IMG/VR virus record: IMGVR_UViG_3300020578_000006 | Span: 165,718 to 229,717 of that record | DNA: 64,000 bases | Reading direction: 5' to 3' (one strand) | Shown: one piece after another, positions 32,073-63,669 of the stretch | How positions within the stretch are numbered: the first letter of the stretch is position 1 | Layout: each line of letters begins with the position of its first letter | Made by a program: the position numbers and the translations under genes | Notes under the pieces: model-generated | Databases searched by the model: none | What the model was told of the DNA's origin: nothing | What the model saw: the letters and a program-made list of their open reading frames with translations, nothing else

Positions 32073-32086
32073 GAATTATTTATTCC

Positions 32087-44146: not shown

Positions 44147-44793
44147 AATCTTTTTCTTAATGCTAGTAATCCTAGTAATGTTAAATGTAAGGTTGAAGGT
44201 TCAGGAACTACTTCAATTATTTCATTACCTCCGTTATAAGAAAATGTACCTACCAATGCTGTAGTATTAGAAGAGAAGACAAACGATTCCATATTAGGTG
44301 TGCTATCAAACAGAGGGGCGCGCCATAAAGTATCAGTTAAAATAGCTTTATCGTAAGAACTGTTATAAGGTGCAGCTGTAAAATTAACTAGGTCTGCATC
44401 ATATATAGCTAATGCAAGTTGTGTATTTACCGCAACATCAGTATTATCTATTTTGCTATAATTGATTTGCATCTCAAGAAAATCTACTCCCGTATCAACA
44501 AAACCTGTACCGTTAGGAAGAGGGGAGAAAATACCATTACTATAAGTACCCCATAACGCTGACATGTAACGGGTATTAACTGTATTATTATCTACAAGAA
44601 CAGAAAATAAATCGTCATACAAAACTATAGAAGAAACAGCTTTGGATTCGGACACCATAAACCAACCAATAAAAAAGCCGCACATTGTGCGGCTTAGCAT
44701 CTTTAAAGCGTTATAAGCGCTCTTGTATCCTAGCATGTGAGGTTCTCCCTCATATAATGTACTTATACCTGCTGTTGTATTGTTTGCAAGCAT
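44143..44793 (-). CDS. PEP-CTERM sorting-domain protein
   Basis: VVPEPSTLHLTLLGLLALRKRL; true start may be a later Met. Confidence 0.85.
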   Translation of the reverse strand: MLANNTTAGISTLYEGEPHMLGYKSAYNALKMLSRTMCGFFIGWFMVSESKAVSSIVLYDDLFSVLVDNNTVNTRYMSALWGTYSNGIFSPLPNGTGFVDTGVDFLEMQINYSKIDNTDVAVNTQLALAIYDADLVNFTAAPYNSSYDKAILTDTLWRAPLFDSTPNMESFVFSSNTTALVGTFSYNGGNEIIEVVPEPSTLHLTLLGLLALRKRL

Positions 44794-45364: not shown

Positions 45365-46042
45365 ATGGGCAACATATGGAATACACTCATTGATGTGCAG
45401 CATATGCTGCAAAAGCAGTTTGAGATCAGTGGCAAGGAAATACAAGAACCAGGCATGGATCGGTTCAATCAACCGGGGTGGATAAACCGGGTATGGACAT
45501 CTGATAATTATCGCAGAGCTCATATTGATGTAGTTGACACCCGTGACATCAAGGGACTATGGATGATGCATTGCTGCATCTTTCCGCATGTACACAATGA
45601 TGCACCCATATTTGGGTTTGATGTGATTGCCGGTAAGAATATTATTACAGGTTGTTTTCATGATTACAGTGTGACTGTGAACAAGGACCATGACATGTGC
45701 ACTTGGTTTGCTCAATATGTGAAACAATTTTCATGGCGCAAAATCAGAGAATTACCCGCATGGGCCAATCGTATATTTTCTCCAAGCATGGTGGCTGCCA
45801 GCCAAGTCACATGTGAAACAGAATTGCAGCAAATCTCTCAAATGGTAACAGACACTTCTGCATATTATTTGCAACATATAGGAGCATCCAATCACAAGGA
45901 TGTAAACACTACTGCAGCTCAAAATTATTATGCTGCCAATCAGAAGGAAAATCCTCACACTCCCCGGGTTATGGCTAAACTGGGTCTTAAGGAAGATGAC
46001 ATTAAAGTCTTTATTCAAAATTGCTTGTTTCCTGAGATATGA
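45365..46042 (+). CDS. pcyX: Ferredoxin-dependent bilin reductase, PcyX/PcyA type
   Basis: YRRAHID55, WMMH69CCIFP, PIFGFD86, QNYY..NQKENPHT. Confidence 0.85.
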   Translation: MGNIWNTLIDVQHMLQKQFEISGKEIQEPGMDRFNQPGWINRVWTSDNYRRAHIDVVDTRDIKGLWMMHCCIFPHVHNDAPIFGFDVIAGKNIITGCFHDYSVTVNKDHDMCTWFAQYVKQFSWRKIRELPAWANRIFSPSMVAASQVTCETELQQISQMVTDTSAYYLQHIGASNHKDVNTTAAQNYYAANQKENPHTPRVMAKLGLKEDDIKVFIQNCLFPEI

Positions 46043-51754: not shown

Positions 51755-52435
51755 TCACTCACTCACTCCTGCAGGCAATATGCCACGTGTCATGACATCA
51801 TACTTGCCCTCAGACACATAAGACTGCAACAAATGCTCCACAATGTTCTTGATGGTATCACCACCTTGGGCTTCGGCCTCACTTGCCAATGACCTGTCAA
51901 TGGCCACAAAGCGTTTGCCACTCTTGTGAATGATGGTGCGTTCACTGGACACTCGGTAGGCATGGAACGGATTCTTGTCATCTTTGAGATGTGTATTCTT
52001 GTACTTCTTAACCAAGTTTTTGCCCTTCTCATCCAGAGAAGTAAGAGCATACCCTTTGTTCTTCAAACGTTCTACCTTGAGTCCAAATGCCTCGGCCCGC
52101 TTCTTGAAGTGCTTGTTGTGGTATTGGTTACTGTTACAGTCTTCAATGCCTTCCACATTATTCTTGTAATGGGCCATCTCATGAATCAGAGTCTCACACA
52201 CATCATCCACATCACGCTTCAAAGTATCAGCAGTGATGTTGATCTCTGGCAATGTCTTCTTGCCATCCTTCCACCGCCCTTGCCAATACCAACCATAGTA
52301 GGACTGCCTACCACGATTGGGGATGAGCGTGAATACAGGAGTGTCTAACTCAGTACCCAACTCTTTATTGAAGAAGTTAAAAGCTTCTACGAGGCGATCG
52401 GTCACCTCACCTGTGATGTTATTACTAGTACTCAT
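51755..52435 (-). CDS. SprT-like zinc metalloprotease
   Basis: TLIHEMAHY, YHNKHFK..AE.FGL. Confidence 0.8.
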   Translation of the reverse strand: MSTSNNITGEVTDRLVEAFNFFNKELGTELDTPVFTLIPNRGRQSYYGWYWQGRWKDGKKTLPEINITADTLKRDVDDVCETLIHEMAHYKNNVEGIEDCNSNQYHNKHFKKRAEAFGLKVERLKNKGYALTSLDEKGKNLVKKYKNTHLKDDKNPFHAYRVSSERTIIHKSGKRFVAIDRSLASEAEAQGGDTIKNIVEHLLQSYVSEGKYDVMTRGILPAGVSE

Positions 52436-52838: not shown

Positions 52839-53066
52839 TTAGATTTTGTAAGGGTAGGTAATCGTATTGAGCTTTTCAACAGTCGAATCAATCACATCAA
52901 TCATCTCATCTTTAGTAAAGATCGGACTGTGAGTTTGATCTTGGTGCAAGTCCACCAACTCAATCATTCGTTTCAGGTTAAGCAAACGGCCAATACAAGT
53001 ACCCACGCTATAAGCGGTGGTCTCTTCATTGGCAGCTGCCACGCTATGTAATGTTGCATTCATCAT
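52839..53066 (-). CDS. Early hypothetical protein
   Basis: Promoter module followed by ATGATG. Confidence 0.55.
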   Translation of the reverse strand: MMNATLHSVAAANEETTAYSVGTCIGRLLNLKRMIELVDLHQDQTHSPIFTKDEMIDVIDSTVEKLNTITYPYKI

Positions 53067-53347
53067 ACTCGTATTATACTGGAAGTTGGGTTAACTGCAA
53101 CTACCAAATGGCCCGCCATATGACATAAGTGACACTGACATATATGGCCAGTGCCACCAAGTTGGCTAACACCATGATGCAGAACTGAATAAGCTTATCC
53201 ATCATGAACCTCCTGTGAAGTATTCATCTTCATATTCTTCCCAGAACTTCTTTAACTCATTCTCTCTCTCTTTGTTATCCAAATACTCTTGTATAACTTG
53301 TTGTTGATCTTCGTTATCCAGACGAGCTATTTTACGAGCAATCCAAC

Positions 53348-53566
53348 TCATATGACTCCCATGCCTTCATACTTGAGCAAAGCATTGTAGAATAACCTCT
53401 GCAAGTCGTTGATAGTATTACACTGATTGATGTGCATGTGCAACCGACGTTTATCTTCGACTCGTATATCAGTCTGATTGATAGCATCCCTAAGCGATCC
53501 CTTAAGCTCGCTTGTTTCTGGTATGTTTAATATGATGTGTTCGAATGCTCGTAGCTTACTAGTCAT
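53348..53566 (-). CDS. Early hypothetical protein
   Basis: ORF in array. Confidence 0.5.
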   Translation of the reverse strand: MTSKLRAFEHIILNIPETSELKGSLRDAINQTDIRVEDKRRLHMHINQCNTINDLQRLFYNALLKYEGMGVI

Positions 53567-53567
53567 G

Positions 53568-53888
53568 TTAGTCTCCTATGTGGTAGCACAATTCTACCTT
53601 AATGTGTTGATCATCAAGCTTTTCCACACCACTCACAGTGGTATAACCACCAAACTTGTTGAAGCGAGCAGGATATAACCTGTTGAGGGCGTTCCACATA
53701 CGGCCCTGATCATATGGCCCATAGAAGGGCACTTTGTAAGCAGAGTGATCATAGTAAGCAGACTGCTGCTCACCACCCAGAGACTCACGCTTGCCCCACT
53801 TGATGCCACCAATGGCAGGCTTGGTCTCAGTACGCCACTCACCAATCATCTGATCGTAAAACTCGTTGGTTACTTCTTTATTCATCAT
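53568..53888 (-). CDS. Early hypothetical protein
   Basis: Promoter module followed by ATGATG. Confidence 0.55.
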   Translation of the reverse strand: MMNKEVTNEFYDQMIGEWRTETKPAIGGIKWGKRESLGGEQQSAYYDHSAYKVPFYGPYDQGRMWNALNRLYPARFNKFGGYTTVSGVEKLDDQHIKVELCYHIGD

Positions 53889-53923
53889 ACCCATAGTATA
53901 TGTGACAGTTGGTTAAACGTCAA

Positions 53924-54127
53924 CTAAAAAGGTCGTTGGTTCAAGTAAGGATGCCACCCATCCAACCGATCTTCAGTCCTCACATCAGCAAAGTCAATGT
54001 ACAATCCCCCATAATACTCATCATCATGTTTGTAGGCCACGTTACAGTCTTTCTGGTAATCGTTTAACTGATTGATACGCTCTGCTAGCTCTCTGTATGT
54101 CATTTGACAGCTCCTTGTGCCAAGCAC
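53924..54127 (-). CDS. Early hypothetical protein
   Basis: MTYRELAERI..L segment; probable later start. Confidence 0.5.
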   Translation of the reverse strand: MLGTRSCQMTYRELAERINQLNDYQKDCNVAYKHDDEYYGGLYIDFADVRTEDRLDGWHPYLNQRPF

Positions 54128-54387
54128 TCTTCAATAGTGGGCTCTTGCCAGTACAAGGTGTTGAAGCCCATGATCCAGACATTCACACCTGGCTTCTTGA
54201 TGCCTCTCATCACCACATCCCCTGCAGGGTGTTGTGCACATGCATCAGTCACAACTTCGATGAATCCTTCTCTGACAGATCCCTGCACATCATATCCCAC
54301 CTTCTTGGCTTCTGTCAAGTAGGGCTTGAGCACTTGGGTGGTCATCAGTTTGGGGAAGAATTTGTGTTTCTGTTGTGTATTCATCAT
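54100..54387 (-). CDS. Early hypothetical protein
   Basis: Promoter module followed by ATGATG. Confidence 0.55.
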   Translation of the reverse strand: MMNTQQKHKFFPKLMTTQVLKPYLTEAKKVGYDVQGSVREGFIEVVTDACAQHPAGDVVMRGIKKPGVNVWIMGFNTLYWQEPTIEECLAQGAVK

Positions 54388-54428
54388 GTCTATATTATGG
54401 CTGAACTGGGGTTTGAGTCAACTACAAT

Positions 54429-54689
54429 TTACTCCGCCCTCACCCACCTAATACCCTTAACTTCATCATCATATCGGGTTTGCACCTCATCCATCATGTT
54501 CTCGGTTTTCACCAACACCACCAACCGCTCCAACTTTGCATCAATATCTTCAATCGTTTTCTTAATAAACTTCCATTTACGGGAATCGATTTTAGCTTCA
54601 TTGCTCACATATTTGAGACCATTCTCCAAGTTCTCAATCATGTAATGGAGATACATACTACGATTATCGCGCTCGGTTTCATTTATCAT
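54429..54689 (-). CDS. Early hypothetical protein
   Basis: Promoter module. Confidence 0.55.
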   Translation of the reverse strand: MINETERDNRSMYLHYMIENLENGLKYVSNEAKIDSRKWKFIKKTIEDIDAKLERLVVLVKTENMMDEVQTRYDDEVKGIRWVRAE

Positions 54690-54724
54690 ACCCATATTAT
54701 GAATGAAATTGAGTTTAGTTCAAC

Positions 54725-55033
54725 TCAAAAATCATCACTATCAACATCATTATTCAACAAATCGTTGATCTTGATAGACTTGATATCGAAGGGTTTAGCG
54801 TTTTTCAGGGCTTCTTTCATTTCCTTTAACCCCTTCTCACTCAATATAACGGTAGAGCTAAAATCTCCCTCTCCATCATTATACAATGTAACTCCTTGAC
54901 TATCAGTATTATAGGAATTGTAATAACCAATCTCCTCTAATACCTTTTCCTCGGTCAAGGAATCCAGCCAGGCCTCTCCACCACACTCCACATCAATCTT
55001 CAACACCGCATATTTTTGTTCTTTTTTCATCAT
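54725..55033 (-). CDS. Early hypothetical protein
   Basis: Promoter module followed by ATGATG. Confidence 0.55.
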   Translation of the reverse strand: MMKKEQKYAVLKIDVECGGEAWLDSLTEEKVLEEIGYYNSYNTDSQGVTLYNDGEGDFSSTVILSEKGLKEMKEALKNAKPFDIKSIKINDLLNNDVDSDDF

Positions 55034-55052
55034 ACTCCTATTATACGGGAAT

Positions 55053-55373
55053 TTACTTTTTCTTCAACTCCAAATTTCTATACTCTTTACTCATTCCCCA
55101 CACATTACCATCTCCATACCAACTCGCACTATCCACCAACTCCCATCCACTATCAATCTTATTAACTTCTTTCAATATATTCCTCCACACCTTCTCAAAC
55201 TTATAACTCCCAAAACTCTTCCACACAATCTTATATCCATTACACAACTCATTATTATATCTATTACAATTATACCGCACCATCTCCTTACCCCTATTAT
55301 CACTAATCTTATTAACCTCTTCAATAAACAACTCTCTAACTTTTTTATTAAACTCTCTATTACTAATTTTCAT
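55053..55373 (-). CDS. Early hypothetical protein, almost C-free coding strand
   Basis: Promoter module; only 2 G on plus strand in 321 nt. Confidence 0.6.
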   Translation of the reverse strand: MKISNREFNKKVRELFIEEVNKISDNRGKEMVRYNCNRYNNELCNGYKIVWKSFGSYKFEKVWRNILKEVNKIDSGWELVDSASWYGDGNVWGMSKEYRNLELKKK

Positions 55374-55408
55374 TTTATTATTATACGGGAAATTTGGATT
55401 TGGTCAAG

Positions 55409-55609
55409 TTAGATTTGGATTGATCCATCCTTTTCAATTTTGTAACAATTACCTGCATCTTCTAGAACTCTTGTATACACCTCTCCTTCAAATATTGAGC
55501 AGATAATTTCTTGACCATCCACTCCTTCAATTATATTACCAACTACTAGTTCGTCTTGTTCTATTTTATTCATACAAATCCACCCAATATATCCATTTAA
55601 CAATTTCAA
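55409..55609 (-). CDS. Early hypothetical protein
   Basis: ORF in array; start uncertain. Confidence 0.4.
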   Translation of the reverse strand: MKLLNGYIGWICMNKIEQDELVVGNIIEGVDGQEIICSIFEGEVYTRVLEDAGNCYKIEKDGSIQI

Positions 55610-55645
55610 TTACTTTATTTAACATACAACTATTCTATTTGAAAT

Positions 55646-55834
55646 TTACTTCTTCTTCAATACAATTACATCATTCTCACAAATACAAATTGTAGGACCA
55701 TTTTTAATTTCTACATTATACAAACTACCATCAAAAACAGCATTAAAAATTGTATCTTTTTTATACAATTCTGTTTTGATATATCCTTTATAGTAACAAT
55801 CCAATTTTGTATCTTTCTTTAATTTAATTAACAT
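55646..55834 (-). CDS. Early hypothetical protein
   Basis: Promoter module. Confidence 0.5.
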   Translation of the reverse strand: MLIKLKKDTKLDCYYKGYIKTELYKKDTIFNAVFDGSLYNVEIKNGPTICICENDVIVLKKK

Positions 55835-55891
55835 ACAACTATTATATCTGAATTTGCATTTTGTTCAATTCAAAAACAATCTATTTTGTTA

Positions 55892-55952
55892 TTGACAGAA
55901 TCTGCATTTCACATATACTATATGTACCACCTTGAATTACGGCAGGAGGGGG
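55892..55952 (+). promoter_or_regulatory. Antisense-oriented promoter element, copy 1
   Basis: TTGACA-16-TATACT then ATATGTACCACCTT..ATTACGGCAGGAGGGGG. Confidence 0.7.
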
Positions 55953-56039
55953 GAGAACTGTACTGCATGTTTTTCTATAAAAACAAGCACTATACATTAC
56001 TTTACTGCTTGTTATTCTGATAATTATTCAAATATACTC

Positions 56040-56276
56040 TTATAATATCCCACTATCAAAAAGGTATTGTCCTCTATTATAATAGGTAGTTAAGTACTCA
56101 CTTCCACTTTTCAGATAGATTTTAGTAGTGATGGAATCATCATCTGTACACCATCCATAATTCATATGGAAGTTCTTGTCCAGAAAGATGCCCTTACCAT
56201 ACACCTTTTTAAGATGTGATGAATGTTTGTCAGCCAATTTGGAGTAGTTCAATTTTATTTGTTCTCCTTCAACCAA
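56040..56276 (-). CDS. Early hypothetical protein
   Basis: ORF in array. Confidence 0.45.
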   Translation of the reverse strand: MVEGEQIKLNYSKLADKHSSHLKKVYGKGIFLDKNFHMNYGWCTDDDSITTKIYLKSGSEYLTTYYNRGQYLFDSGIL

Positions 56277-56548
56277 CTAACTTTATCCAACTTCTTGTTA
56301 GTAAAGTCAATCAACATACTCTCTTCACCCTTATAGATGGTGTGAGTGGGAGTTCTCTGAATGCTATCAAAATTGTCTTTCCAATTGTAGTATTCTCTCT
56401 CTCCATTTGTATATTCATAATAATAACCCTTACTATCTTTACCATCATATTCATCTCCAACTGTAAAGAGAAGAAATTCCTTCTCACTAATCCATTTGGA
56501 TTTTCCATTATACAAGTCAATTGTTAGATACTGTTTGTTTTTCATCAT
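56255..56548 (-). CDS. Early hypothetical protein
   Basis: Promoter module followed by ATGATG. Confidence 0.55.
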   Translation of the reverse strand: MMKNKQYLTIDLYNGKSKWISEKEFLLFTVGDEYDGKDSKGYYYEYTNGEREYYNWKDNFDSIQRTPTHTIYKGEESMLIDFTNKKLDKVSWLKENK

Positions 56549-56579
56549 ACAACTATAATAGCTGAATTTGGATATTGAG

Positions 56580-56810
56580 TCAACTCAAATAAGAGATGTT
56601 TCTAGATTTGATATCATCTAGAATGTCTTGTTTAAAAACTTCTAGAGAAGAATCAATAAGCTCTCTTAATGCTTGCTTCCTTCTGGTAATGGGGTAGTCA
56701 TGCAATAGATCCAACTGATCATCTGCCCACCTCTTTACAAGTTCAGTATAGAAGGAGAGTACATCAGTTTGGTTGTATGGTTTGAATTTATTAATCAGGT
56801 GTGGCATCAT
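56580..56810 (-). CDS. Early protein paralogous to the N-terminal domain of 2846..3730
   Basis: Visible alignment; promoter module. Confidence 0.6.
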   Translation of the reverse strand: MMPHLINKFKPYNQTDVLSFYTELVKRWADDQLDLLHDYPITRRKQALRELIDSSLEVFKQDILDDIKSRNISYLS

Positions 56811-56852
56811 ACTCTTATTGTAGGGGAATGTTGGGTTGAAGTCAACTATAAT

Positions 56853-56904
56853 GTATCAGATATATCAGATGTTTGCATGCAGAGTATCAGATATATCAGA
56901 TGTT
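56853..56904. repeat. Two 21-bp direct repeats GTATCAGATATATCAGATGTT, 31-bp period
   Basis: Exact copies at 56853 and 56884. Confidence 0.85.
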
Positions 56905-57055
56905 AGGTATTAAGAATCTTAACAATCTTATTGAGGGTAATTGTGGGTGAGGGGTCATCTTCCTCTTTTTCTACACCATCCAATTGACCAAACTGTAACA
57001 GATCCTCTAACTCCTCAATAATCTTCTTTCTCTTTTTAGGTGTAAGCTTAATCAT
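56903..57055 (-). CDS. Early hypothetical protein (50 aa, not in ORF track)
   Basis: MIKLTPKKRKKIIEELEDLL...KILNT; overlaps previous stop. Confidence 0.45.
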   Translation of the reverse strand: MIKLTPKKRKKIIEELEDLLQFGQLDGVEKEEDDPSPTITLNKIVKILNT

Positions 57056-57251
57056 CTTCTGCCTCTTCAGTTCCAGTCACTTCAATCTCTACATCACCAT
57101 CATCATAAGCCTTTTGAACAGTATCAAAATCGATACTGTCTTCAGCTTTCTTGTTGGCCTCTTCTTCATTTTTTGCAGTTACAGTTTTTCTGATGAAGAG
57201 GGCTACCAACACATCCACATCAAACTTCTTCTTTTTAGTAGTCTTACTCAT
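57048..57251 (-). CDS. Early hypothetical protein
   Basis: TVTAKNEEEA..KA motif. Confidence 0.5.
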   Translation of the reverse strand: MSKTTKKKKFDVDVLVALFIRKTVTAKNEEEANKKAEDSIDFDTVQKAYDDGDVEIEVTGTEEAEDD

Positions 57252-57499
57252 TAGTCATTGCCCTCATTACTGAACATCTTGCCTGTATCAATAAGGTTCT
57301 CTGCAAATCCTGTAATGCCATAAGCAGTCTCTTCTAGATCCCCATTATCTTCACAATTCTCACTATCTAGATACCTTTCTGCCCATTTAATATCTGACTT
57401 CTTGAGGGTCTCTTGAAATTCCTCAATTGCATCAAACACATTTGCCATCAGTTTGTCAAGCTTTTCAGCTCTTTCAGTTGTCATTTTGTTTTTCATCAT
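57251..57499 (-). CDS. Early hypothetical protein
   Basis: Promoter module followed by ATGATG. Confidence 0.55.
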   Translation of the reverse strand: MMKNKMTTERAEKLDKLMANVFDAIEEFQETLKKSDIKWAERYLDSENCEDNGDLEETAYGITGFAENLIDTGKMFSNEGND

Positions 57500-57529
57500 C
57501 CTCCTATTATATTAGAAATTTGGATTTAG

Positions 57530-57781
57530 TCAATTTTTAATTTTAACAAAACTCAAATCATACCCTCTCCCCCATTCCCCATACCACTCTCTAAAATACT
57601 TTTCATCCTTATCAATACTGCTCTTTATCCATCTGTTAGCAATCTTCTTGTTCTGCTTGTCAACCTCTTTTTTAACCTTCTTCATTTCATATCTGCTAAC
57701 AATATCTACAAGCCCACCATCCCAATCAATCTTAAGGTAAAGGGGTCCCTTCTTTCTTTTTGTTTTTGTATTATTCATCAT
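57530..57781 (-). CDS. Early hypothetical protein
   Basis: Promoter module followed by ATGATG. Confidence 0.55.
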   Translation of the reverse strand: MMNNTKTKRKKGPLYLKIDWDGGLVDIVSRYEMKKVKKEVDKQNKKIANRWIKSSIDKDEKYFREWYGEWGRGYDLSFVKIKN

Positions 57782-57807
57782 GCCTATATTATATGGGAAG
57801 TTAGAAT

Positions 57808-57990
57808 TTAGACAATATAAATCTGTTTTTCAACCACATACTTGCTAAACTCTTCTAATATTTGATCCACCCCCCACTCACTAACTCCATAACTCTCTTT
57901 CAAGTTATCATAATATAACTCCAAATCACCACACCCCACCTCTTCAATGAAGCTTTCAATTTGTTCTAAACTATCAAACTCATGTTTCAT
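57808..57990 (-). CDS. Early hypothetical protein (start MKHEF)
   Basis: Start reassigned from the promoter module. Confidence 0.5.
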   Translation of the reverse strand: MKHEFDSLEQIESFIEEVGCGDLELYYDNLKESYGVSEWGVDQILEEFSKYVVEKQIYIV

Positions 57991-57997
57991 TTTTATA

Positions 57998-58243
57998 TTA
58001 TACAGGCAAATTGGATTTAGACAATTTATTTTCTTTATTATATTTGCTCCAATCCACATACTTCAACAAATCAATACATCCTTCCACCTCTACACCCCAC
58101 CTATCTATACTCTCTATTAAATGTACACTACCCTCTATCCCTTCTATATCATATATATTATGTTCTGCAAAATTAGCCATTTTATAAAATGCCTTTTCAA
58201 ATTGCTTATATAGTTGTTTGTACTGTTTTTGTTTATTTACCAT
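57998..58243 (-). CDS. Early hypothetical protein (start MVNKQ)
   Basis: Start reassigned from the promoter module. Confidence 0.5.
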   Translation of the reverse strand: MVNKQKQYKQLYKQFEKAFYKMANFAEHNIYDIEGIEGSVHLIESIDRWGVEVEGCIDLLKYVDWSKYNKENKLSKSNLPV

Positions 58244-58291
58244 ACCATTATTATATGGGAAGTTAGGGTTGAAACAAGCCAAATTTTATTA

Positions 58292-58353
58292 TTGACAGAA
58301 ATGTAGATTCCCATATACTATATGTACCACCTTAAGATTACGGCAGGAGGGGG
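58292..58353 (+). promoter_or_regulatory. Antisense-oriented promoter element, copy 2
   Basis: TTGACA-16-TATACT then ATATGTACCACCTT...ATTACGGCAGGAGGGGG. Confidence 0.7.
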
Positions 58354-58624
58354 CAGGACTGGACTTTTTCCTTTACGGTAAAGTTACAGAAAAACTATTA
58401 AAGAAAAACTCCTTCATTCAATTATCAAGGAGTTACAATATGGTTGATGGAGTTGATGTATCTACTTCTTAATTTGTTGGTAGATACAATAACAAATTGC
58501 TATACTAAAAATAGAAAAAGTAATAATTCCCCACCAACAAATAGGGAGTGGGTTATGGTTGTCCTTTATACTATAAAAAACATGTTCACAGAAGGTGGGA
58601 TCGTTTACAGTGGATAGGAATGTC

Positions 58625-58936
58625 TTAAGCATAACGTTTAGCCGATTCCAGTTCGGCTTGTTGTATTAACCAGCTATTCACCTTGGAGATAAGGTTCTTA
58701 CCCTCCATGTTCTCTATGCTAGCATGATAGGCCTCGTACATATCAAGTACTTGACCCACTTGAATGGAGCGCAATACCTTGGGCGTGATGGCCCGTATCC
58801 AATTCAACACCTCTTTATGGCCATAAAACTTGCCAGAGACATCCAATTCTTTACCATATTCTTCCACCTGATTACAAATGATACGTATAGTGTCTTGGGC
58901 GATGGCCATACCAGGTAACTTTCTACGTATATGCAT
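58625..58936 (-). CDS. Early hypothetical protein
   Basis: 103-aa ORF. Confidence 0.5.
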   Translation of the reverse strand: MHIRRKLPGMAIAQDTIRIICNQVEEYGKELDVSGKFYGHKEVLNWIRAITPKVLRSIQVGQVLDMYEAYHASIENMEGKNLISKVNSWLIQQAELESAKRYA

Positions 58937-58998
58937 GTGTGTGTATTATATATCAGAGGGGCTATTATTTCCACGCACCTATTATCCCCACGAAACAA

Positions 58999-59262
58999 TT
59001 AATAAGGTTTTGAGTAGTATTCCCAAGGTGGCGCCGGCATACCATTCCATGTAATTGCTGGGTCACTATTGAAGTATTCAATTAAGATATCACGATCACC
59101 ACCTTTGAGTTTGTCAATCTTGTTACGGAATTTGTGCAGTGTTTGGTATTGGGGATCTGAGCTATACATGCAATAGTCAAACAACATGTTATACAGTGTC
59201 TTGCCGTCCAAGGTAAGAGAGTCATACTTATCATAGGAAAGGCCAATGGTAGGATTGTTCAT
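58999..59262 (-). CDS. Early hypothetical protein
   Basis: 87-aa ORF. Confidence 0.5.
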   Translation of the reverse strand: MNNPTIGLSYDKYDSLTLDGKTLYNMLFDYCMYSSDPQYQTLHKFRNKIDKLKGGDRDILIEYFNSDPAITWNGMPAPPWEYYSKPY

Positions 59263-59264
59263 GT

Positions 59265-59588
59265 TTAAACCTCTAGTGTATTGTACCGGACATGGGCACT
59301 ATCTAAATCGGTACATGTCCACCCCATAATACCCCACAGAGAGGAGCCTGGATAGGTTTCAGAAGGTTCAATGTAAGAGCCGCCCATGGTATAACCATTG
59401 TGTTTGCCAATCTTCACCACTTCATAGGCAGTAAACTCACCCTTGGTTTGCTCATAGATGGCTCTATTGCCTTCTCGTTTAATCTGACGGTAGGTATAGC
59501 CCTTCTTATTGAAGAGTTGGGGGATGGGTTTGTGGGTAATAGCGGTTTTTGAGACTGTGTTCTCTGCAGTAGTTTCTGTATTCATCAT
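59265..59588 (-). CDS. Conserved-looking phage early protein
   Basis: Y.QI.R....AIY...YEV......E.YP.SS.WG..GWT pattern; promoter module. Confidence 0.6.
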   Translation of the reverse strand: MMNTETTAENTVSKTAITHKPIPQLFNKKGYTYRQIKREGNRAIYEQTKGEFTAYEVVKIGKHNGYTMGGSYIEPSETYPGSSLWGIMGWTCTDLDSAHVRYNTLEV

Positions 59589-59747
59589 GCCCTTATTATA
59601 CTGGAACTATTGGCCAAGTCAACTGTAAAAGTAATACCGGTTTCTTTAACGTAGACACCGGCAAACTACGATGATGAAGTGGTTGTTTTCAATAGGTAAA
59701 CCACCTTAACCTCTTAGTTTCTACTAAGACTGTCGGCCTCCGAATAT

Positions 59748-60017
59748 TCAGAACAAGTCACTATAATCCTTGAAGTCTTCAACTGCCTGATTAAGCTCAT
59801 ACTTTGCTATAGCCAATTCAAATTCATTGATCTTATTCTCCACCATGGTACGAAGCTCATTATGGGTAAGCTGAAATCCGCAAGCCACTGGATACTTGTG
59901 GATTGGAACCCCTGGAAACAACAGATTATAGACCTCTTTAGTACTCCTATTATAGAGCAACTCAACTTTCTCTCCTGCTATGTTCAATAATACTCTGTCT
60001 AAAACGCCATTCATCAT
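59748..60017 (-). CDS. Early hypothetical protein
   Basis: Promoter followed by ATGATG. Confidence 0.5.
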   Translation of the reverse strand: MMNGVLDRVLLNIAGEKVELLYNRSTKEVYNLLFPGVPIHKYPVACGFQLTHNELRTMVENKINEFELAIAKYELNQAVEDFKDYSDLF

Positions 60018-60180
60018 TTCAATATTCTATAAGCCTTTAAAAAAAATAACAAGCTTATTCCCAGTATTCCTCAGTATTTCCATATTCCTTTTGTAACCTA
60101 CTTATATATGAACACCACTATTATATCTACGTACTGATTATCCGTGCGTTTTTATTAAAAATTCGTGCGTTTTTGGTGTT

Positions 60181-60483
60181 TTATGCTGCATAATCACCAT
60201 CTTCTTCATATTCTTCCAAAGCCTCTTCATCCAGATCAGAAACAATAATACGATAAACCCCTTGATCTGATTCATATTCTGTGTTATCCAGGTCGGCTAA
60301 TTCTTCTGCAGTGATTGCATTTTCTACAGCAATACAAGGCAGATCCTCCACTTCCAAATCTTCTAAAGATTGTACTTCTTTGCCATTAACCTCAATGTTA
60401 TTAATAAAATAGTCATCATCCTCCACAATCTCTTGATGTTGTCTGTTAACGGTAACCTCAATTAAAATCTTCTTATTTTTCAT
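60181..60483 (-). CDS. Acidic hypothetical protein
   Basis: 100-aa ORF. Confidence 0.5.
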   Translation of the reverse strand: MKNKKILIEVTVNRQHQEIVEDDDYFINNIEVNGKEVQSLEDLEVEDLPCIAVENAITAEELADLDNTEYESDQGVYRIIVSDLDEEALEEYEEDGDYAA

Positions 60484-60790
60484 TCTTTTTCCTTTGATGG
60501 TTGTGGGCTTGTTCTATTTCTGGGTATTCTTTTACTGGTGTTTTCCATAACAAATCATCGGTGTCCAAATCTGAACTCCACAACATTAACCTACTATACA
60601 CTTTATATCCTACACCAAATCTCATTGTTGTTCGACTTATTAGATCACCCAGAAAATAGGTAACATAAACCAACCCTCTCCTTCCAATCTCTCTTACTAT
60701 GAAGTAACAAGCCGACAGTATAATAAACCCAATACCAAATAAAAAAGTAACAATCTCAGAAAACCTATTCAATCTTGCATTAGTTTCCAT
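60473..60790 (-). CDS. Membrane hypothetical protein
   Basis: N-terminal hydrophobic helix. Confidence 0.5.
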   Translation of the reverse strand: METNARLNRFSEIVTFLFGIGFIILSACYFIVREIGRRGLVYVTYFLGDLISRTTMRFGVGYKVYSRLMLWSSDLDTDDLLWKTPVKEYPEIEQAHNHQRKKNEK

Positions 60791-61050
60791 TCTTCACCTA
60801 CTAGTTTGTATAGTTTACCATGGCCTTGAAACTCTACCTTTTCTATCTCCTGCAATAGATTATATACTGAGTGTTGGGATTTTCTATTATCTTCTGCAGT
60901 CTCAGAAGGTTGTTTCAATTCCTCATTATAATACTTCTGAAGAGCTTTCACAATGAATTCATACTGCTCTTCAGTAACTCTTAGGTCTTTGTATCTCACT
61001 ATGTTATTTAGTGGTAAGAAGGAGTGCAAATGCATCAAACCCATCTTCAT
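60769..61050 (-). CDS. Hypothetical protein
   Basis: ORF in array; start uncertain. Confidence 0.4.
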   Translation of the reverse strand: MKMGLMHLHSFLPLNNIVRYKDLRVTEEQYEFIVKALQKYYNEELKQPSETAEDNRKSQHSVYNLLQEIEKVEFQGHGKLYKLVGEEWKLMQD

Positions 61051-61222
61051 TGTCTTGGGTAATATTATGCTTACCGCAATACCATTCCTTGTTCTGGTCT
61101 AACTTAATCTTAACAATCTTAAGCTTATCTATATCGTCAACCCCATCTTCATATCCCCTTATTACTACTCTCACATCACCTTCAAATTTATTAAGCTCAT
61201 GTATTAAATCAGATACAGTCAT
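61004..61222 (-). CDS. Hypothetical protein
   Basis: MTVSDLIHEL...VVIRGYEDG pattern. Confidence 0.55.
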   Translation of the reverse strand: MTVSDLIHELNKFEGDVRVVIRGYEDGVDDIDKLKIVKIKLDQNKEWYCGKHNITQDNEDGFDAFALLLTTK

Positions 61223-61256
61223 AAAAACCTTCGGAACCGGACCGACCTTCGGTCGA

Positions 61257-61565
61257 TTAAGATAATGGGCCCTCCTCGTAGTCGTCTAAAATTTCCTTAA
61301 CTTGCTTTCCTTTTGTTTTTGTAAAGATCTCTTTGATCTTCTTCTTTAACATCTTGGTTGGTTTATGTTGGTAATAGGGCAATACACTTGCTTTATACTC
61401 TTTATCAATTTCTTGAATACGAAGTACATGGATTTGTTCAGCTTCTTTGACAATCTGTTCTAATTTTAAACGATTAACCACTTCTGGCATACTGTAAGAA
61501 TCCTGGTACCAGGCAAGGAATTTAGCAATGAAACGAAGGGCTTGGTCTTTGGCAGTATTCTTCAT
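61257..61565 (-). CDS. Hypothetical protein
   Basis: 102-aa ORF. Confidence 0.5.
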   Translation of the reverse strand: MKNTAKDQALRFIAKFLAWYQDSYSMPEVVNRLKLEQIVKEAEQIHVLRIQEIDKEYKASVLPYYQHKPTKMLKKKIKEIFTKTKGKQVKEILDDYEEGPLS

Positions 61566-61698
61566 TTCTTTTTCTTTGTCTTGCTCTTCTCTACAAGCAA
61601 ATACTCATCTAAAGACTTCTCCAGCTTATTGGTAATATCATCCAGATAACTGATAATCTTATTAAGATGTCTCTTAAACTCTTTAATATCGACAGTAT

Positions 61699-62058
61699 TC
61701 ATGGCTTTCTCTTCAGTAATTTGTTGATTTCTTTTGTTTCGTAAACAGGTATTTTAGAAGGATCTTTTGAATACTTCAAGTGAAAATGAATATTTTGATC
61801 GGCCTTTTTTCTTAATAAATCAATTTTAATATCTTTTCTATCTTCTAGGATAAAGTCAATCACCTCATACCAGACCTTTTTCTTTACATTCTCTACTGTT
61901 TTAATGTAGAACATAGCTTCCAGAAAATCGGTATTAGCATTACAATAATCAATTACAATATCATCAACTGTATATTTAAAATCCATCATCTCAAATACAT
62001 CATATGTATGAGAAAAAATTGCATGCCGAACACCTTCGGCGATAGAATAGTTACTCAT
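61699..62058 (-). CDS. Hypothetical protein
   Basis: 119-aa ORF. Confidence 0.5.
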   Translation of the reverse strand: MSNYSIAEGVRHAIFSHTYDVFEMMDFKYTVDDIVIDYCNANTDFLEAMFYIKTVENVKKKVWYEVIDFILEDRKDIKIDLLRKKADQNIHFHLKYSKDPSKIPVYETKEINKLLKRKP

Positions 62059-62281
62059 CTTCTCTATCTAAAGCAATAAATTCTAACTCTTCAATCTCTT
62101 CTTCTGTATATTGATCAGCAATTGCCGGGTCTTCTAGAATTCGGTTTAATATCTTCTTGGCTTGCTCTCTATGTTTTTTACTAATCATTTTACCCATATT
62201 AAATGATGACTAATAGCTCCAACTGCAATTATAATACCCCAGCTCAAAAGTCCAAGGATAATAGTAAAAATAAAAGGTACT

Positions 62282-62656
62282 TTATTCACTCTCAGCCAAT
62301 TCTAATCTCTTTTCAAGCTCTGCTTGAACACTAATATCTAGCTCATCATTTATCCAGCCATAATCTTTCTTATAACTTTTATGGAGCTTTTTATAGTCTT
62401 CTCCAACCTCTTTGCCTGCTTTGAAAGCCACTTTTTCCAGCTTATCTTCCAGAGTACTATCCAATTCATAACGATACGCCTTGGAAGTATAAACATTGAA
62501 AGCTTGATCCATGGATAAGCCGGACTTAACCAAGCCATTTAAGAATGCATTGGAGACAATGGATGCTGTTCTGTCATAAGAAATAGATTGTTTAAGCAGA
62601 TGCATATCATTAATCTCAACTCCTGAGCCGGTGAAATCGATATATTTACTGTTCAT
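62282..62656 (-). CDS. Early hypothetical protein
   Basis: Promoter module. Confidence 0.55.
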   Translation of the reverse strand: MNSKYIDFTGSGVEINDMHLLKQSISYDRTASIVSNAFLNGLVKSGLSMDQAFNVYTSKAYRYELDSTLEDKLEKVAFKAGKEVGEDYKKLHKSYKKDYGWINDELDISVQAELEKRLELAESE

Positions 62657-62672
62657 TCTATTATTATATGGG

Positions 62673-63032
62673 TTATTTGGACTTAGTCAATACTAATTTT
62701 TCAGGCACCAACTTAACATCTACCACTTTAATACCTGTAATTTTAAAGTATTTACTGTAATCCTTTAACAGCTCAACAATATCCCTTAATTCATTACCTT
62801 CAGTAGCCCACCATTTTGGTTTAAAACTAACTCTTTCCTCTTTACCATATCCATAAAACCACTCTCTACTCTCATAAAAAAACCTACCACTTTTAGGAAT
62901 CTTTTCTAACCTATCTGTAATCCTAAAACCATTAATCCAACATCCACATTTTGTCTTTACCTGGCTGGTAGATTGCAAGCCTGTATAGTAACCTTTCCTA
63001 CCATTCACAGTCATTTCAATTACTTTCATCAT
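62673..63032 (-). CDS. Early protein, paralog A1
   Basis: NGRKGYYTG...SGRFFYESREW, shared with 63203..63508. Confidence 0.65.
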   Translation of the reverse strand: MMKVIEMTVNGRKGYYTGLQSTSQVKTKCGCWINGFRITDRLEKIPKSGRFFYESREWFYGYGKEERVSFKPKWWATEGNELRDIVELLKDYSKYFKITGIKVVDVKLVPEKLVLTKSK

Positions 63033-63057
63033 ACTAATATTATGGCTGAATTTAAGA

Positions 63058-63210
63058 TTAGGTCAAGCTCTTTAAATACTCTTCTGCTTGTTCAATTTCA
63101 TCAAATGATTTGAGAACTATTTCGTGGGTTTGATCAAATGAATCAACTTCAACAACATTGTAGATAGGAAGCCTACCATCATACTCTTCTTTAATGAGAT
63201 ACTCAATCAT
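63058..63210 (-). CDS. Small early protein, paralog B1 (50 aa)
   Basis: MIEYLIKEEYDGRLPIYNVVEV...EEYL. Confidence 0.55.
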   Translation of the reverse strand: MIEYLIKEEYDGRLPIYNVVEVDSFDQTHEIVLKSFDEIEQAEEYLKSLT

Positions 63211-63508
63211 GGCTAAGGCTTGATCTCTTCAAATGATAATGAGAAGGCACAAAATTAACATCTACCACTTTAACACCTGTAATTGTAACTTTATACTCTT
63301 TTCCATACTCTTTTATCCATTTAATAGTAGCTTTCAGTTCGGGTCCTTCGTTTTTAATACACCACTCTCTACTTTCATAAAAAAACCTGCCACTATTAGG
63401 AATGTTTTCTAGCTTATTTGTAGTCCTGAAACCATTATTATATCTAGACCAACGACCTGTATAGTATCCTTTCCTACCATTTTGAACCATTTCAACTACT
63501 TTCATCAT
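63203..63508 (-). CDS. Early protein, paralog A2
   Basis: NGRKGYYTG...SGRFFYESREW. Confidence 0.65.
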   Translation of the reverse strand: MMKVVEMVQNGRKGYYTGRWSRYNNGFRTTNKLENIPNSGRFFYESREWCIKNEGPELKATIKWIKEYGKEYKVTITGVKVVDVNFVPSHYHLKRSSLSHD

Positions 63509-63510
63509 AC

Positions 63511-63669
63511 TCATATTATGTCTGAATTTAAGATTGTGTCAAGATACTTTTCTGCATCTGTTTTATTATCAAACGTTTTTATTACTTTTGTTATTTTTGT
63601 CTCAACTTCTACTACTTCATACATAGGCAGCCTGCCATCATAAACTTCTGCTACGTAATAATCTTTCAT
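63511..63669 (-). CDS. Small early protein, paralog B2 (52 aa)
   Basis: MKDYYVAEVYDGRLPMYEVVEV...EKYL. Confidence 0.55.
   Translation of the reverse strand: MKDYYVAEVYDGRLPMYEVVEVETKITKVIKTFDNKTDAEKYLDTILNSDII

Follow-up and report, generated by a model that had tools for sequence, protein, structure and literature searches.

Results

The early-type genes of an uncultured T4-like lake phage lie in an array of small genes without known relatives, on the minus strand of a 64,000-nucleotide stretch (the window) that forms the last 64 kb of the 229,717-bp IMG/VR record IMGVR_UViG_3300020578_000006. The record is CheckV-complete and encodes a T4 gp20 portal (PF07230, E 5e-94) and a homologue of the late sigma factor gp55 (genome positions 164141-164509), identifying it as a deep-branching T4-like jumbo phage that is about 30% identical to any isolate. 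It was detected in 20 lake-water metagenomes but in no RNA run. An earlier note, made from the sequence alone, had described about 19 modules of the form TTGANN-16/17-(T/C)ATAAT-N6-ATG in positions 53061-63545, about 12 of them starting with ATGATG. To verify this, the window was scanned with a pattern comprising TTGNNN, a spacer of 16-18 nt, a TATAAT-like hexamer, 5-7 nt and an ATG. The results showed exactly 19 modules within 53061-63545, all on the minus strand and none on the plus strand, and thus the observation made in the note was fully confirmed. All 19 have exactly 6 nt (N6) between the -10 box and the ATG, 14 have a 16-nt spacer, and 12 begin with ATGATG. In contrast, 1000 first-order Markov simulations of the region gave a mean of 0.25 hits (maximum 3), and for the strict form of the module the mean was 0.016 against 14 observed. 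The modules and the other features of the window are listed in Table 1.

Table 1. Promoter modules, antisense elements and other features of the window (positions are those of the window; for modules, the A of the ATG is given).
Positions	Strand	Feature	A of ATG	ORF driven	Remarks
63506..63542	-	Module TTGACA-N16-CATAAT-ATGAGT-ATGATG	63508	63203..63508 (101 aa)	
63030..63066	-	Module TTGACC-N16-CATAAT-ATTAGT-ATGATG	63032	62673..63032 (119 aa)	Gene is a paralogue of the 63508 gene
62654..62690	-	Module TTGACT-N16-TATAAT-AATAGA-ATG	62656	62282..62656 (124 aa)	Then drives about 9 overlapping ORFs down to 60181 that have no modules of their own (an operon)
60015..60052	-	Module TTGTTA-N17-TAGAAT-ATTGAA-ATGATG	60017	59748..60017 (89 aa)	
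59586..59622	-	Module TTGACT-N16-TATAAT-AAGGGC-ATGATG	59588	59265..59588 (107 aa)	In relatives this gene lies on the other side of the SprT-like gene
58241..58277	-	Module TTGTTT-N16-TATAAT-AATGGT-ATG	58243	57998..58243 (81 aa)	Protein family F10; back-to-back with antisense element B
57988..58024	-	Module TTGTCT-N16-TATAAT-ATAAAA-ATG	57990	57808..57990 (60 aa)	A population variant joins its -10 box to that of the 58243 module, deleting the gene between them
57779..57815	-	Module TTGTCT-N16-TATAAT-ATAGGC-ATGATG	57781	57530..57781 (83 aa)	
57497..57533	-	Module TTGACT-N16-TATAAT-AGGAGG-ATGATG	57499	57251..57499 (82 aa)	
56808..56845	-	Module TTGACT-N17-TACAAT-AAGAGT-ATGATG	56810	56580..56810 (76 aa)	
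56546..56583	-	Module TTGACT-N17-TATTAT-AGTTGT-ATGATG	56548	56255..56548 (97 aa)	
55832..55868	-	Module TTGAAC-N16-TATAAT-AGTTGT-ATG	55834	55646..55834 (62 aa)	Back-to-back with antisense element A
55623..55660	-	Module TTGAAG-N17-TAGAAT-AGTTGT-ATG	55625		Opens only a 19-codon frame, which overlaps the ATG at 55573 (54 aa); may be a frameshifted paralogue
55371..55407	-	Module TTGACC-N16-TATAAT-AATAAA-ATG	55373	55053..55373 (106 aa)	
55031..55067	-	Module TTGAAG-N16-TATAAT-AGGAGT-ATGATG	55033	54725..55033 (102 aa)	A population variant joins it to the body of the 55373 gene
54687..54723	-	Module TTGAAC-N16-CATAAT-ATGGGT-ATG	54689	54429..54689 (86 aa)	
54385..54421	-	Module TTGACT-N16-CATAAT-ATAGAC-ATGATG	54387	54100..54387 (95 aa)	In three lake runs, contigs leave the reference sequence here
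53886..53923	-	Module TTGACG-N17-TATACT-ATGGGT-ATGATG	53888	53568..53888 (106 aa)	Followed by three SD-led genes with starts at 53566, 53351 and 53205
53064..53100	-	Module TTGCAG-N16-TATAAT-ACGAGT-ATGATG	53066	52839..53066 (75 aa)	Last module before the conserved SprT-like gene
51755..52435		SprT-like gene			Conserved
55892..56025	+	Antisense element A			TTGACA-N16-TATACT
58292..58445	+	Antisense element B			Second copy of element A; 3' part different, with its own two-way hairpin
8275-8931	-	folE			-10/N6/ATG geometry
10624-11277		queD/PTPS			-10/N6/ATG geometry
12058-12804		queE-like radical-SAM gene			-10/N6/ATG geometry
36385-37299	-	UvdE			-10/N6/ATG geometry
1537		ORF			-10/N6/ATG geometry

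We next wanted to ascertain how tightly the promoters are tied to the start codons. A promoter-only pattern with no ATG requirement gave 25 sites in the phage's own genome, 17 of which have the ATG exactly 6 nt after the -10 box, and 50 sites in relatives that were fetched independently of the motif, 38 of which have the ATG at exactly this distance. A logo of 73 distinct modules with 16-nt spacers reads G-TTGAC(T/C)-AAAnCCnAAnTTCC-nn-(T/C)ATAAT, with C at -16 in 68 of 73, in agreement with the 'AANCCAANTTC'-like spacer given in the note. The logo also showed G at -2 in 48 of 73, T at -1 in 49 of 73, A at +1 and A at +4 in 63 of 73, with the -10 box at -12 to -7 relative to the A of the ATG. 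There is no SD and no room for a 5' UTR, and the A-rich 5' ends are predicted to be unstructured, since the first 30 nt fold at a mean of -0.45 kcal/mol as compared to -2.67 for windows at internal ATGs (p = 4e-47). In addition, as the note had claimed for some modules, the -35 boxes are embedded in or lie next to the end of the preceding gene, whose stop codon often lies inside the box: the stop codon of the upstream ORF ends between -12 and +32 relative to the first base of the -35 hexamer, as exemplified by a TGA inside the hexamer (T-TGA-CT) at 57499 and 56548 and by TTGAC-TAA or TTGTC-TAA at 63032 and 57781. Terminators were not enriched in the region (5 found against 4.7 expected). The antisense elements A and B carry the same promoter type but point against the early genes. 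In element A the promoter is followed by a conserved non-coding stretch of about 45 nt containing CCACC and GGAGGGGGG, and then by a hairpin that looks like a terminator on both strands, making the element a candidate small RNA and a boundary between transcription units.

The note had also listed queD, queE, folE, uvsE and the ORF at 1537 as sharing the -10/N6/ATG geometry, which held for the genes given in Table 1. Given this, we set out to determine whether the layout is genome-wide, a point which the note had missed together with the inclusion of the late promoters. Among 315 genes, a -10 box lies exactly 6 nt before the first ATG in 41 (control 2.1), as compared to 9 genes at N5 and 10 at N7, and the T4 late-promoter core TAAATA lies 4-6 nt before the ATG in 50 (control 0.6), including large structural genes, whereas only 16% of genes have an SD-like motif. 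Divergent gene pairs have start codons only 28-60 nt apart, each with its own -10-type box. When the same script was applied to other phages, T4 showed 60% SD-like starts and no -10 box within 4-10 nt of the ATG, and in Syn9 TAAATA lies 20-24 nt before the ATG; these two phages thus lack the layout. Pelagiphage HTVC008M, in contrast, has TAAATA at N5 for 11 late genes.

To assess whether the modules are associated with gene exchange, as the note had inferred, cassettes were compared across related phage contigs. The family contains 271 cassettes, 268 of them on the majority strand of their locus, making 197 distinct cassettes in 71 protein families (numbered with the prefix F). Relatives keep the modules but reorder the cassettes, and the same gene family abuts different neighbours across a module: F10 abuts F27, F29, F7 or F13, and F11, F13 and F6 likewise have several different neighbours. 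Homology runs through the stop codon and the module and ends at the ATG. BLAST block ends fall inside modules 19.5% of the time against 6.5% for random positions, although this enrichment is partly expected because modules coincide with gene boundaries. Lake-metagenome contigs also break at modules, and minor population variants join one module to another, with recorded joints at 57995->58249 (7 shared letters in the -10 box) and 55370->55022. These joints rest on low-depth contigs (depth 3.7-6.9) with short flanks (24-34 nt), a class that calls for caution. The stringent 42-nt module pattern was present in only 38 stretches from about 30 contigs among the 2.9 million contigs of IMG/VR, and is thus clade-specific.

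Discussion

Together, these data indicate that the region is the hyperplastic early region of the phage, 'early' being assigned by analogy with T4, and that it is an array of small autonomous cassettes, each consisting of a host sigma-70-type promoter (TTGAC(T/C), a 16-17 nt spacer, (T/C)ATAAT) fused at a fixed 6-nt distance to the start codon of a short gene. The interpretation offered in the note was only partly supported. Its proposal that each module is a leaderless expression unit is strongly supported by geometry. A TANNNT box starting about 12 nt before the start codon is the published in silico mark of leaderless genes (PMC3160421), and A(+4) has been proposed as a recognition signal for leaderless mRNA (PMC10491246). 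With the -10 hexamer at -12 to -7, T at -1 and A at +1, RNA polymerase should start at the A of the ATG, and the primary transcript, carrying no 5' UTR and no SD, would be translated as a leaderless mRNA through 5'-terminal AUG recognition by 70S or 30S-IF2-fMet-tRNA, provided that the host ribosomes accept such mRNAs well. In this view each gene would also be carried on read-through transcripts from upstream modules, since the cassettes abut without terminators, and much of the mRNA for each gene may be polycistronic RNA in which the AUG is internal. The proposal that the modules are recombination handles is also supported. In contrast, the suggestion that the doubled ATG may buffer TSS wobble is not supported: ATGATG was found in 9 of 18 hyperplastic-region early modules, against 1 of 23 other -10/N6 genes, 0 of 50 late-type and 0 of 49 SD-led genes, and the late-type genes have looser spacing (N4-6) yet no doubled ATG. 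Rather, ATGATGAA(A/T) behaves as the conserved 3' end of the cassette, and it co-occurs with SD-like N6 sequences (14 of 14 against 41 of 77, p = 6e-4, though the modules are not independent). What the comparisons establish is the modules with their fixed geometry, the genome-wide layout and the reshuffling of cassettes at modules; the start sites, which rest on sigma-70 rules established in E. coli in the absence of RNA data for this phage, the leaderless translation, the mechanism of recombination and any binding of a regulator to the spacer, as the note had suggested, are inferred or hypothetical. With these limits, we consider this reading likely.

We also considered whether the modules are real promoters but proteins are made mainly from polycistronic read-through transcripts, on which the AU-rich promoter sequence would act as an unstructured, SD-independent (S1/standby) ribosome landing site, helped in some cassettes by an SD-like N6 and the second ATG, so that the tight spacing would reflect genome compaction and not leaderless translation. 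The lack of terminators between cassettes and the stop codons inside -35 boxes are in line with this view. About a quarter of N6 sequences look SD-like (AGGAGG, AGGAGT), all 14 modules with GGAG, GAGG or AGGA in N6 have ATGATG, and some genes of the phage do use canonical SDs, so the host ribosome reads SDs. However, compaction alone does not explain an exact distance, such as the peak at N6 or the ATG position in the promoter-only sites of relatives. An SD embedded in N6 lies only 4 nt from the second ATG, whereas the phage's real SDs lie 7-8 nt away. Furthermore, the first-in-unit modules (62656, 58243, 55834) have no upstream transcript to ride on, and divergent pairs 28-32 nt apart leave no upstream RNA at all. 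We therefore regard this alternative as unlikely.

It is likewise unlikely that the repeats are mainly a selfish or mobile PeSL-type (promoter-early stem-loop) cassette family whose conservation, including the spacer and ATGATGAA, reflects recent copying and gene conversion and not selection for a regulator site or for leaderless translation. This would fit with the clade-specific pattern, the module-to-module joints in populations and the fact that conservation extends past the ATG into codons 2-3 only in the hyperplastic-region modules. On the other hand, conserved and free positions alternate within the spacer (AA, CC, AA, TTCC), which looks like constraint rather than recent identity, and the -10/N6/ATG geometry also holds for non-repeated promoters with a different -35 box (TTGATT: folE, queD, queE, uvdE) and for late promoters. 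Lastly, the region is 34-36% GC and a generic promoter scan found 66 promoter-like sites against 45.7 in shuffles, but a chance product of AT-rich, low-complexity intergenic sequence is refuted by the number of full modules over expectation, the strict strand bias and the conservation in relatives found independently of the motif.

The closest known systems are the PeSL cassettes of T4-type phages (Arbiol et al. 2010, PMC2839356; Comeau et al. 2014, PMC4122927). These too are repeated near-consensus sigma-70 early promoters between small genes without known relatives in hyperplastic regions of T4-like genomes, are associated with insertions, deletions, replacements and displacement of single genes between relatives, and can delete the DNA between tandem copies. 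PeSLs as defined carry a stem-loop upstream of the promoter and a Shine-Dalgarno sequence before the start codon. In the present cassettes, as the note had not recognized, there is no stem-loop, the upstream stop codon lying in or next to the -35 box, and no 5' UTR or SD, and the conserved block includes the first three codons and a TTCC spacer motif. The leaderless ('TA-led') genes of Actinobacteria and Deinococcus-Thermus (PMC3160421, PMC4007540, PMC4633059) similarly have a -10 box starting about 12 nt before an AUG start codon and no SD, but those are cellular genes, usually without a conserved -35 box, whereas here full -35/-10 promoters of a T4-like phage are arranged as repeated cassettes and the feature also applies to a phage-specific late promoter class. 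Among phages, lambda cI from PRM is a single leaderless gene (PMC10491246). In the Thermus phages phiYS40 and P23-45 mRNAs reportedly begin at the AUG as well (Sevostyanova et al. 2007; Berdygulova et al. 2011), and in phiYS40 leaderless middle and late mRNAs are thought to be favoured after infection; these phages are not T4-like and infect a host rich in leaderless genes. Neither lambda nor the Thermus phages are known to have an array of recombining early cassettes. The Pelagibacter myophage HTVC008M, also aquatic and T4-like, is slightly the closest isolate by shared ORFs and encodes bS21 (PMC9723584), but it has 52% SD-like starts and no peak of -10 boxes at N6, and so has no leaderless early cassettes.

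Given that the gp55-type late promoters (NTAAATA) share the no-leader layout with the early cassettes and that SD-like motifs are scarce, the phage as a whole is, on the inferred start sites, built for 5'-UTR-free expression. In addition, the roughly 50-bp conserved module, from -43 to +9 and including ATGATGAA(A/T), would act as a portable homology patch: crossing-over between modules would delete, duplicate and reorder cassettes while every product keeps a complete promoter-start codon unit, so that in function these are PeSL-like cassettes without the stem-loop and the SD, marking the points where small genes are swapped between related phages.

Genomic Setting of the Early Region

To place the early region in its genomic context, we first examined the whole record, which at 229,717 bp is rated as complete by CheckV and has a GC content of 35-36%. 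The genome encodes a T4-type portal (gp20; Pfam Portal_T4, E 5e-94) and a homolog of the T4 late sigma factor gp55, which was detected by tblastn with both T4 gene 55 (E 8e-8) and the Syn9 homolog (E 3e-16) at the same position. The portal is only about 30% identical to that of any isolate, and DNA searches of the phage isolate collection gave no match, indicating that no close cultured relative exists. By shared ORFs the phage is slightly closer to pelagiphage HTVC008M and cyanophage Syn9 than to T4. A search of sequencing runs showed that twenty lake-water metagenome runs hold the region, all hits being DNA metagenomes and none an RNA run; these runs were therefore used to examine population structure, and every transcription start site (TSS) discussed below is inferred from sequence. 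Together, these data indicated that this is an uncultured, deep-branching T4-like jumbo phage from lakes. With regard to the host, the genome carries a ferredoxin-dependent bilin reductase (PF05996), two proteins with PEP-CTERM sorting signals, PhoH and the ribosomal protein bS21, lacks psbA, and has a tmRNA for which the standard tmRNA family gave the best match. These are hints about the host (a Gram-negative with an exosortase) and do not amount to an identification.

The two ends of the record lie inside the early region, and since the same minus-strand modules continue beyond the window at the other end of the record, the early region wraps around the record ends. This record and several contigs of relatives end inside the early region, as expected for assembly breaks in a heterogeneous, repeat-rich stretch and not for true genome ends. 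None of 20 early-region proteins scanned passed the curated cut-off of Pfam. Sixteen related IMG/VR contigs were found through the flanking SprT-like gene (64-82% amino acid identity for most), and those that reach into the region carry 7-15 modules each, nearly all on the same strand as that gene. A stringent 42-nt module pattern occurred in only 38 stretches from about 30 contigs of IMG/VR (2.9 million contigs), many of them contigs already found through the SprT-like gene; the module is thus a clade-specific device. Over this genome and its relatives there are 271 cassettes, 268 of them on the majority strand of their locus. These make 197 distinct cassettes, 111 with ATGATG, with a median protein length of 88 aa, in 71 protein families of which 36 are singletons. 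The positions of these and other features are collected in the table below.

Positions of the features described in the text ("window", position in the analyzed stretch; "genome", position in the full record)
Feature	Position	Strand	Remarks
Analyzed stretch	genome 165718-229717		Last 64 kb of the record
Nineteen promoter modules	window 53066-63542	-	
Further modules of the same type	genome 2363, 5724, 6398, 9977	-	
gp55 homolog	genome 164141-164509		
Antisense copies of the promoter type	window 55892-56025; 58292-58445	+	
Two more antisense copies, in relative contig L021	L021 near 5564 and 3317	-	
Module opening a short frame (ATG at 55625)	window 55566-55660	-	19-codon frame overlapping the ATG at 55573 (54 aa)
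Operon behind the single 62656 module	window 60181-62656	-	About ten overlapping small ORFs
-10/N6/ATG promoters with -35 box TTGAT(T/A)	window 8931, 10624, 12058, 37299; genome 57649, 70000, 157096 and others		folE, queD, queE-like, UvdE and other non-hyperplastic genes
Examples of TAAATA 4-6 nt before the ATG	genome 29566, 110638, 207073 (window 41356), 140306/140336		
Divergent start-codon pairs	genome 140306/140336; 30907/30940; phoH/queE pair		Start codons 28-60 nt apart
Promoter (TTGCCT-N16-TATACT) of tRNA-Leu/Met/Glu cluster	genome 7195-7432	-	Ends 6 nt before the cluster
bS21	genome 39344-39463, ORF start 39520	-	PF01165, 28.2 bits; preceded by TAAATA-N4-ATG
tmRNA	window 32084-32487	-	Rfam RF00023, 87 bits, full length
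Bilin reductase and two PEP-CTERM proteins	window 45365-46042; window 44143-44793; genome 13611-14327	+; -; -	
Record ends	window 64000 = genome 229717, and genome 1		Relatives' contigs L018, L020, L022, L025 and L026 also end inside the early region

The Modules Lie at a Fixed Distance from the Start Codon

In order to test whether the repeated promoter modules are real, we scanned the region for TTGNNN, a 16-18 nt spacer, a TATAAT-like hexamer, 5-7 nt and ATG. The scan found exactly 19 modules, all on the minus strand and none on the plus strand. All 19 have N6 between the -10 box and the ATG, 14 have a 16-nt spacer, and 12 begin ATGATG, whereas Markov simulations of the region gave 0.25 hits on average. 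Given that ATG was part of this pattern, the start codon is AUG by construction, and we therefore repeated the search with a promoter-only pattern. This gave 25 sites in this genome, 17 of them with ATG exactly 6 nt after the -10 box, and in relatives that were fetched through a neighboring gene rather than through the motif it gave 50 sites, 38 of them with ATG at exactly +6. A logo of 73 distinct N16 modules reads G-TTGAC(T/C)-AAAnCCnAAnTTCC-nn-(T/C)ATAAT-A(G/T)(G)AGT-ATG-ATG-AA(A/T), with C at -16 in 68 of 73, G at -2 in 48, T at -1 in 49 and A at +4 in 63. The stop codon of the previous gene lies inside or within a few bases of the -35 hexamer, for example T-TGA-CT or TTGAC-TAA. The earlier note had also remarked that folE, queD, a queE-like gene, UvdE and the ORF at 1537 share the -10/N6/ATG geometry, and this holds as well; what that note had observed was thus confirmed in every detail. 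The promoters of folE, queD, the queE-like gene, UvdE and other non-hyperplastic genes form a second subclass, which has the -35 box TTGAT(T/A), lacks the TTCC spacer motif and may represent a different timing class.

The module at 55625 opens only a short frame that may be a frameshifted paralog of the neighboring 55834 gene, and the small ORFs behind the 62656 module have no modules of their own but form an operon with overlapping stop and start codons, in contrast to the one-gene cassettes on either side.

Sequence Evidence for Leaderless Expression

We next asked whether the geometry is that expected of leaderless genes. With the A of the ATG as +1, the -10 hexamer occupies -12 to -7 in all 19 modules, which is the canonical position, while position -1 is mostly T and +1 is A, the preferred pyrimidine-purine start context of sigma-70 promoters. 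A TANNNT box starting about 12 nt before the start codon is the published in silico signature of leaderless genes (PMC3160421). There is no Shine-Dalgarno (SD) sequence at a usable distance. A(+4), proposed as a recognition contact for leaderless mRNA on the 70S ribosome (PMC10491246), is present in 86% of modules. The first 30 nt are almost free of structure, with a mean MFE of -0.45 kcal/mol against -2.67 for windows at internal ATGs (p = 4e-47), and this fits the accessibility determinant of Bharmal et al. A test of codon-position variability at the N-termini was uninformative, since indels follow the MMK/MMN start.

The strongest argument comes from the rest of the genome. Among 315 ORFs of at least 50 aa, a -10-like box ends exactly 6 nt before the first ATG in 41, the counts at 5 and 7 nt being 9 and 10, and the internal-ATG control giving 2.1. 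The genome has a TATAAATA-type late promoter, and the T4 late-promoter core TAAATA (NTAAATA) ends 4-6 nt before the ATG in 50 genes, against 0.6 in the control. These 50 include large structural genes, and also the 1170-, 1132-, 1052-, 653-, 581- and 495-aa genes; the late genes therefore also look leaderless. Only 16% of genes have an SD-like motif, against 9% in the control. In divergent gene pairs each gene has its own -10-type box 5-6 nt from its ATG, and such short spacers cannot hold two promoters plus two leaders. A promoter of the same type also ends 6 nt before a tRNA cluster; the absence of a leader therefore seems to apply to RNA genes too. The same script was then applied to three other T4-like phages, and the results showed that the early-cassette layout was not found in any of these three isolates, while the late layout has a partial precedent in the pelagiphage. 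What our analysis shows is this geometry, whereas the TSS at the A of the ATG and the leaderless translation that would follow are inferred from it.

Start-codon context in this phage and in three T4-like isolates examined with the same script
Phage	SD-like starts	-10 box near ATG	TAAATA position
This phage	16%	peak of 41 at N6	4-6 nt before ATG, 50 genes
T4	60%	none within 4-10 nt	not near the ATG
Syn9	29%	no peak	20-24 nt before ATG
HTVC008M	52%	no peak at N6	5 nt before ATG, 11 genes

Probable Read-Through Transcription and the Doubled ATG

Terminator-like hairpins are not enriched in the region (5 against 4.7 expected) and the cassettes abut, so each gene is probably also carried on longer transcripts. 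About a quarter of the N6 sequences are SD-like (AGGAGG or AGGAGT), at a non-functional distance from the first ATG, and all 14 such modules have ATGATG, against 41 of 77 others (p = 6e-4; the modules are not independent). This association hints that the second ATG might serve internal initiation on read-through RNA, with the SD in N6 providing a second mode of translation. However, the SD would lie only 4 nt from the second ATG, while the real SDs of the phage lie 7-8 nt away, which weakens the idea, and we keep it as a rival or complement rather than as the main reading. The earlier note had suggested instead that the doubled ATG buffers TSS wobble. ATGATG is confined to the hyperplastic-region modules, occurring in 9 of 18 there, against 1 of 23 other N6 promoters, 0 of 50 late-type and 0 of 49 SD-led genes, and the late class has looser spacing yet no doubled ATG, which speaks against a general buffer of this kind. 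ATGATGAA(A/T) behaves as the conserved 3' end of the cassette.

Rearrangements Between Relatives Fall at the Modules

To assess whether the modules act as recombination handles, cassette order was compared between relatives. A conserved backbone of cassette families flanks a variable stretch in which order differs, and the same family directly abuts different neighbors across a module; protein family F10 is followed by F27, F29, F7 or F13, and F11, F13 and F6 also have several different neighbors. In an alignment of F10 3' ends, homology runs through the stop codon (inside TTGAC-TAA) and the module, and ends at the ATG. BLAST block ends fall inside modules 19.5% of the time, against 6.5% for random points, although this is partly expected, since modules are gene boundaries. 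In lake-metagenome contigs, assemblies break at modules. Minor variants join 57995 to 58249, which is -10 box to -10 box with 7 shared letters and removes one gene, and another joins 55370 to 55022, placing the module of one gene on the body of another. Three runs leave the reference at the 54387 module. These joints are, however, low-depth with short flanks. On these grounds the interpretation offered in the earlier note was partly supported: its core reading of a leaderless unit that is also a recombination handle is well supported by sequence evidence, with the TSS inferred, whereas buffering of TSS wobble is not supported and binding of a regulator to the conserved spacer remains a conjecture.

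Comparison with PeSL Cassettes and Known Leaderless Genes

PeSLs of T4-type phages are defined as an AT-rich stretch, a stem-loop, a sigma-70-like early promoter with -35 and -10 boxes about 17 nt apart, an SD and a start codon; they lie in hyperplastic regions next to indels, and they can delete the DNA between tandem copies (PMC4122927). The present modules share the promoter (TTGNNN-N16/17-(T/C)ATAAT-like boxes in all 19, consensus TTGAC(T/C)/TATAAT), the location between small variable ORFs of a T4-like genome, and the association with rearrangements. They lack two defining features. The stem-loop is absent, as the upstream stop codon lies -12 to +32 nt from the start of the -35 box, none of the terminator-like sites adjoins a module, and the only two hairpins in the region lie beside the antisense elements described below. 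The SD and 5' UTR are absent as well, since the start codon, although present, lies 6 nt after the -10 box and, with the inferred TSS, leaves no room for a 5' UTR. The modules thus work like PeSLs but are a distinct variant, inferred to be leaderless. Leaderless genes are known in cells and in some phages, such as lambda cI. The Thermus phages phiYS40 and P23-45 are further examples. Our literature searches found no description of leaderless early cassettes or of a genome-wide leaderless design in a T4-like phage, which is not proof that none exists.

Antisense Elements and Translation-Related Genes

Two plus-strand copies of the same promoter type point against the early genes, and two more copies occur in a relative. 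Each is followed by a conserved non-coding segment of about 45 nt (ACCACCTT..TTACGGCAGGAGGGGG), which holds CCACC and GGAGGGGGG, and then by a hairpin that is terminator-like on both strands. The element always lies back-to-back with a module whose gene starts ATG(T/G)TAA, and it is a candidate small RNA or a boundary between transcription units. Folding gave weak, inconsistent predicted structures, and 4 copies are too few for covariation. The phage also encodes bS21, with a score above the cut-off, and a tmRNA whose predicted tag of 38 residues begins ANKSIAEDNF and ends ELELV, and is thus much longer than usual and does not end in LAA. No IF1 homolog was found in our search.

These genes, together with the SD-poor design, allow a speculative reading that we consider unlikely but that the evidence does not rule out. 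In this view, the lineage has largely abandoned 5' UTRs and SD-dependent initiation for both early and late genes, and it may actively bias the host ribosome toward its own leaderless mRNAs, using its own bS21 and perhaps the two conserved candidate antisense small RNAs, which carry SD-like (GGAGGGGGG) and anti-SD-like (CCACCUU) stretches. SD-dependent host translation would then be shut off while phage translation continues, and leaderless design would be a host-takeover strategy, not just compaction.

Implications

The feature described here is real, statistically overwhelming and evolutionarily conserved. T4 is the textbook case of phage gene expression, with leadered, SD-driven mRNAs, and PeSLs are its proposed engine of early-gene shuffling. 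This lineage suggests that both can be stripped to a minimum, in that a unit of roughly 50 bp appears to serve at once as promoter, transcription start, translation start and recombination site, and the late promoters of the phage appear to be used in the same way. If the TSSs are confirmed, the layout warns that SD-based gene callers will misplace starts in such phages, and the modules, being compact and portable, could be tested as minimal expression cassettes. It would also be the first T4-like phage with genome-wide leaderless expression, and, given the phage-encoded bS21 and tmRNA, would offer a natural system for asking how leaderless mRNAs compete for ribosomes during infection.
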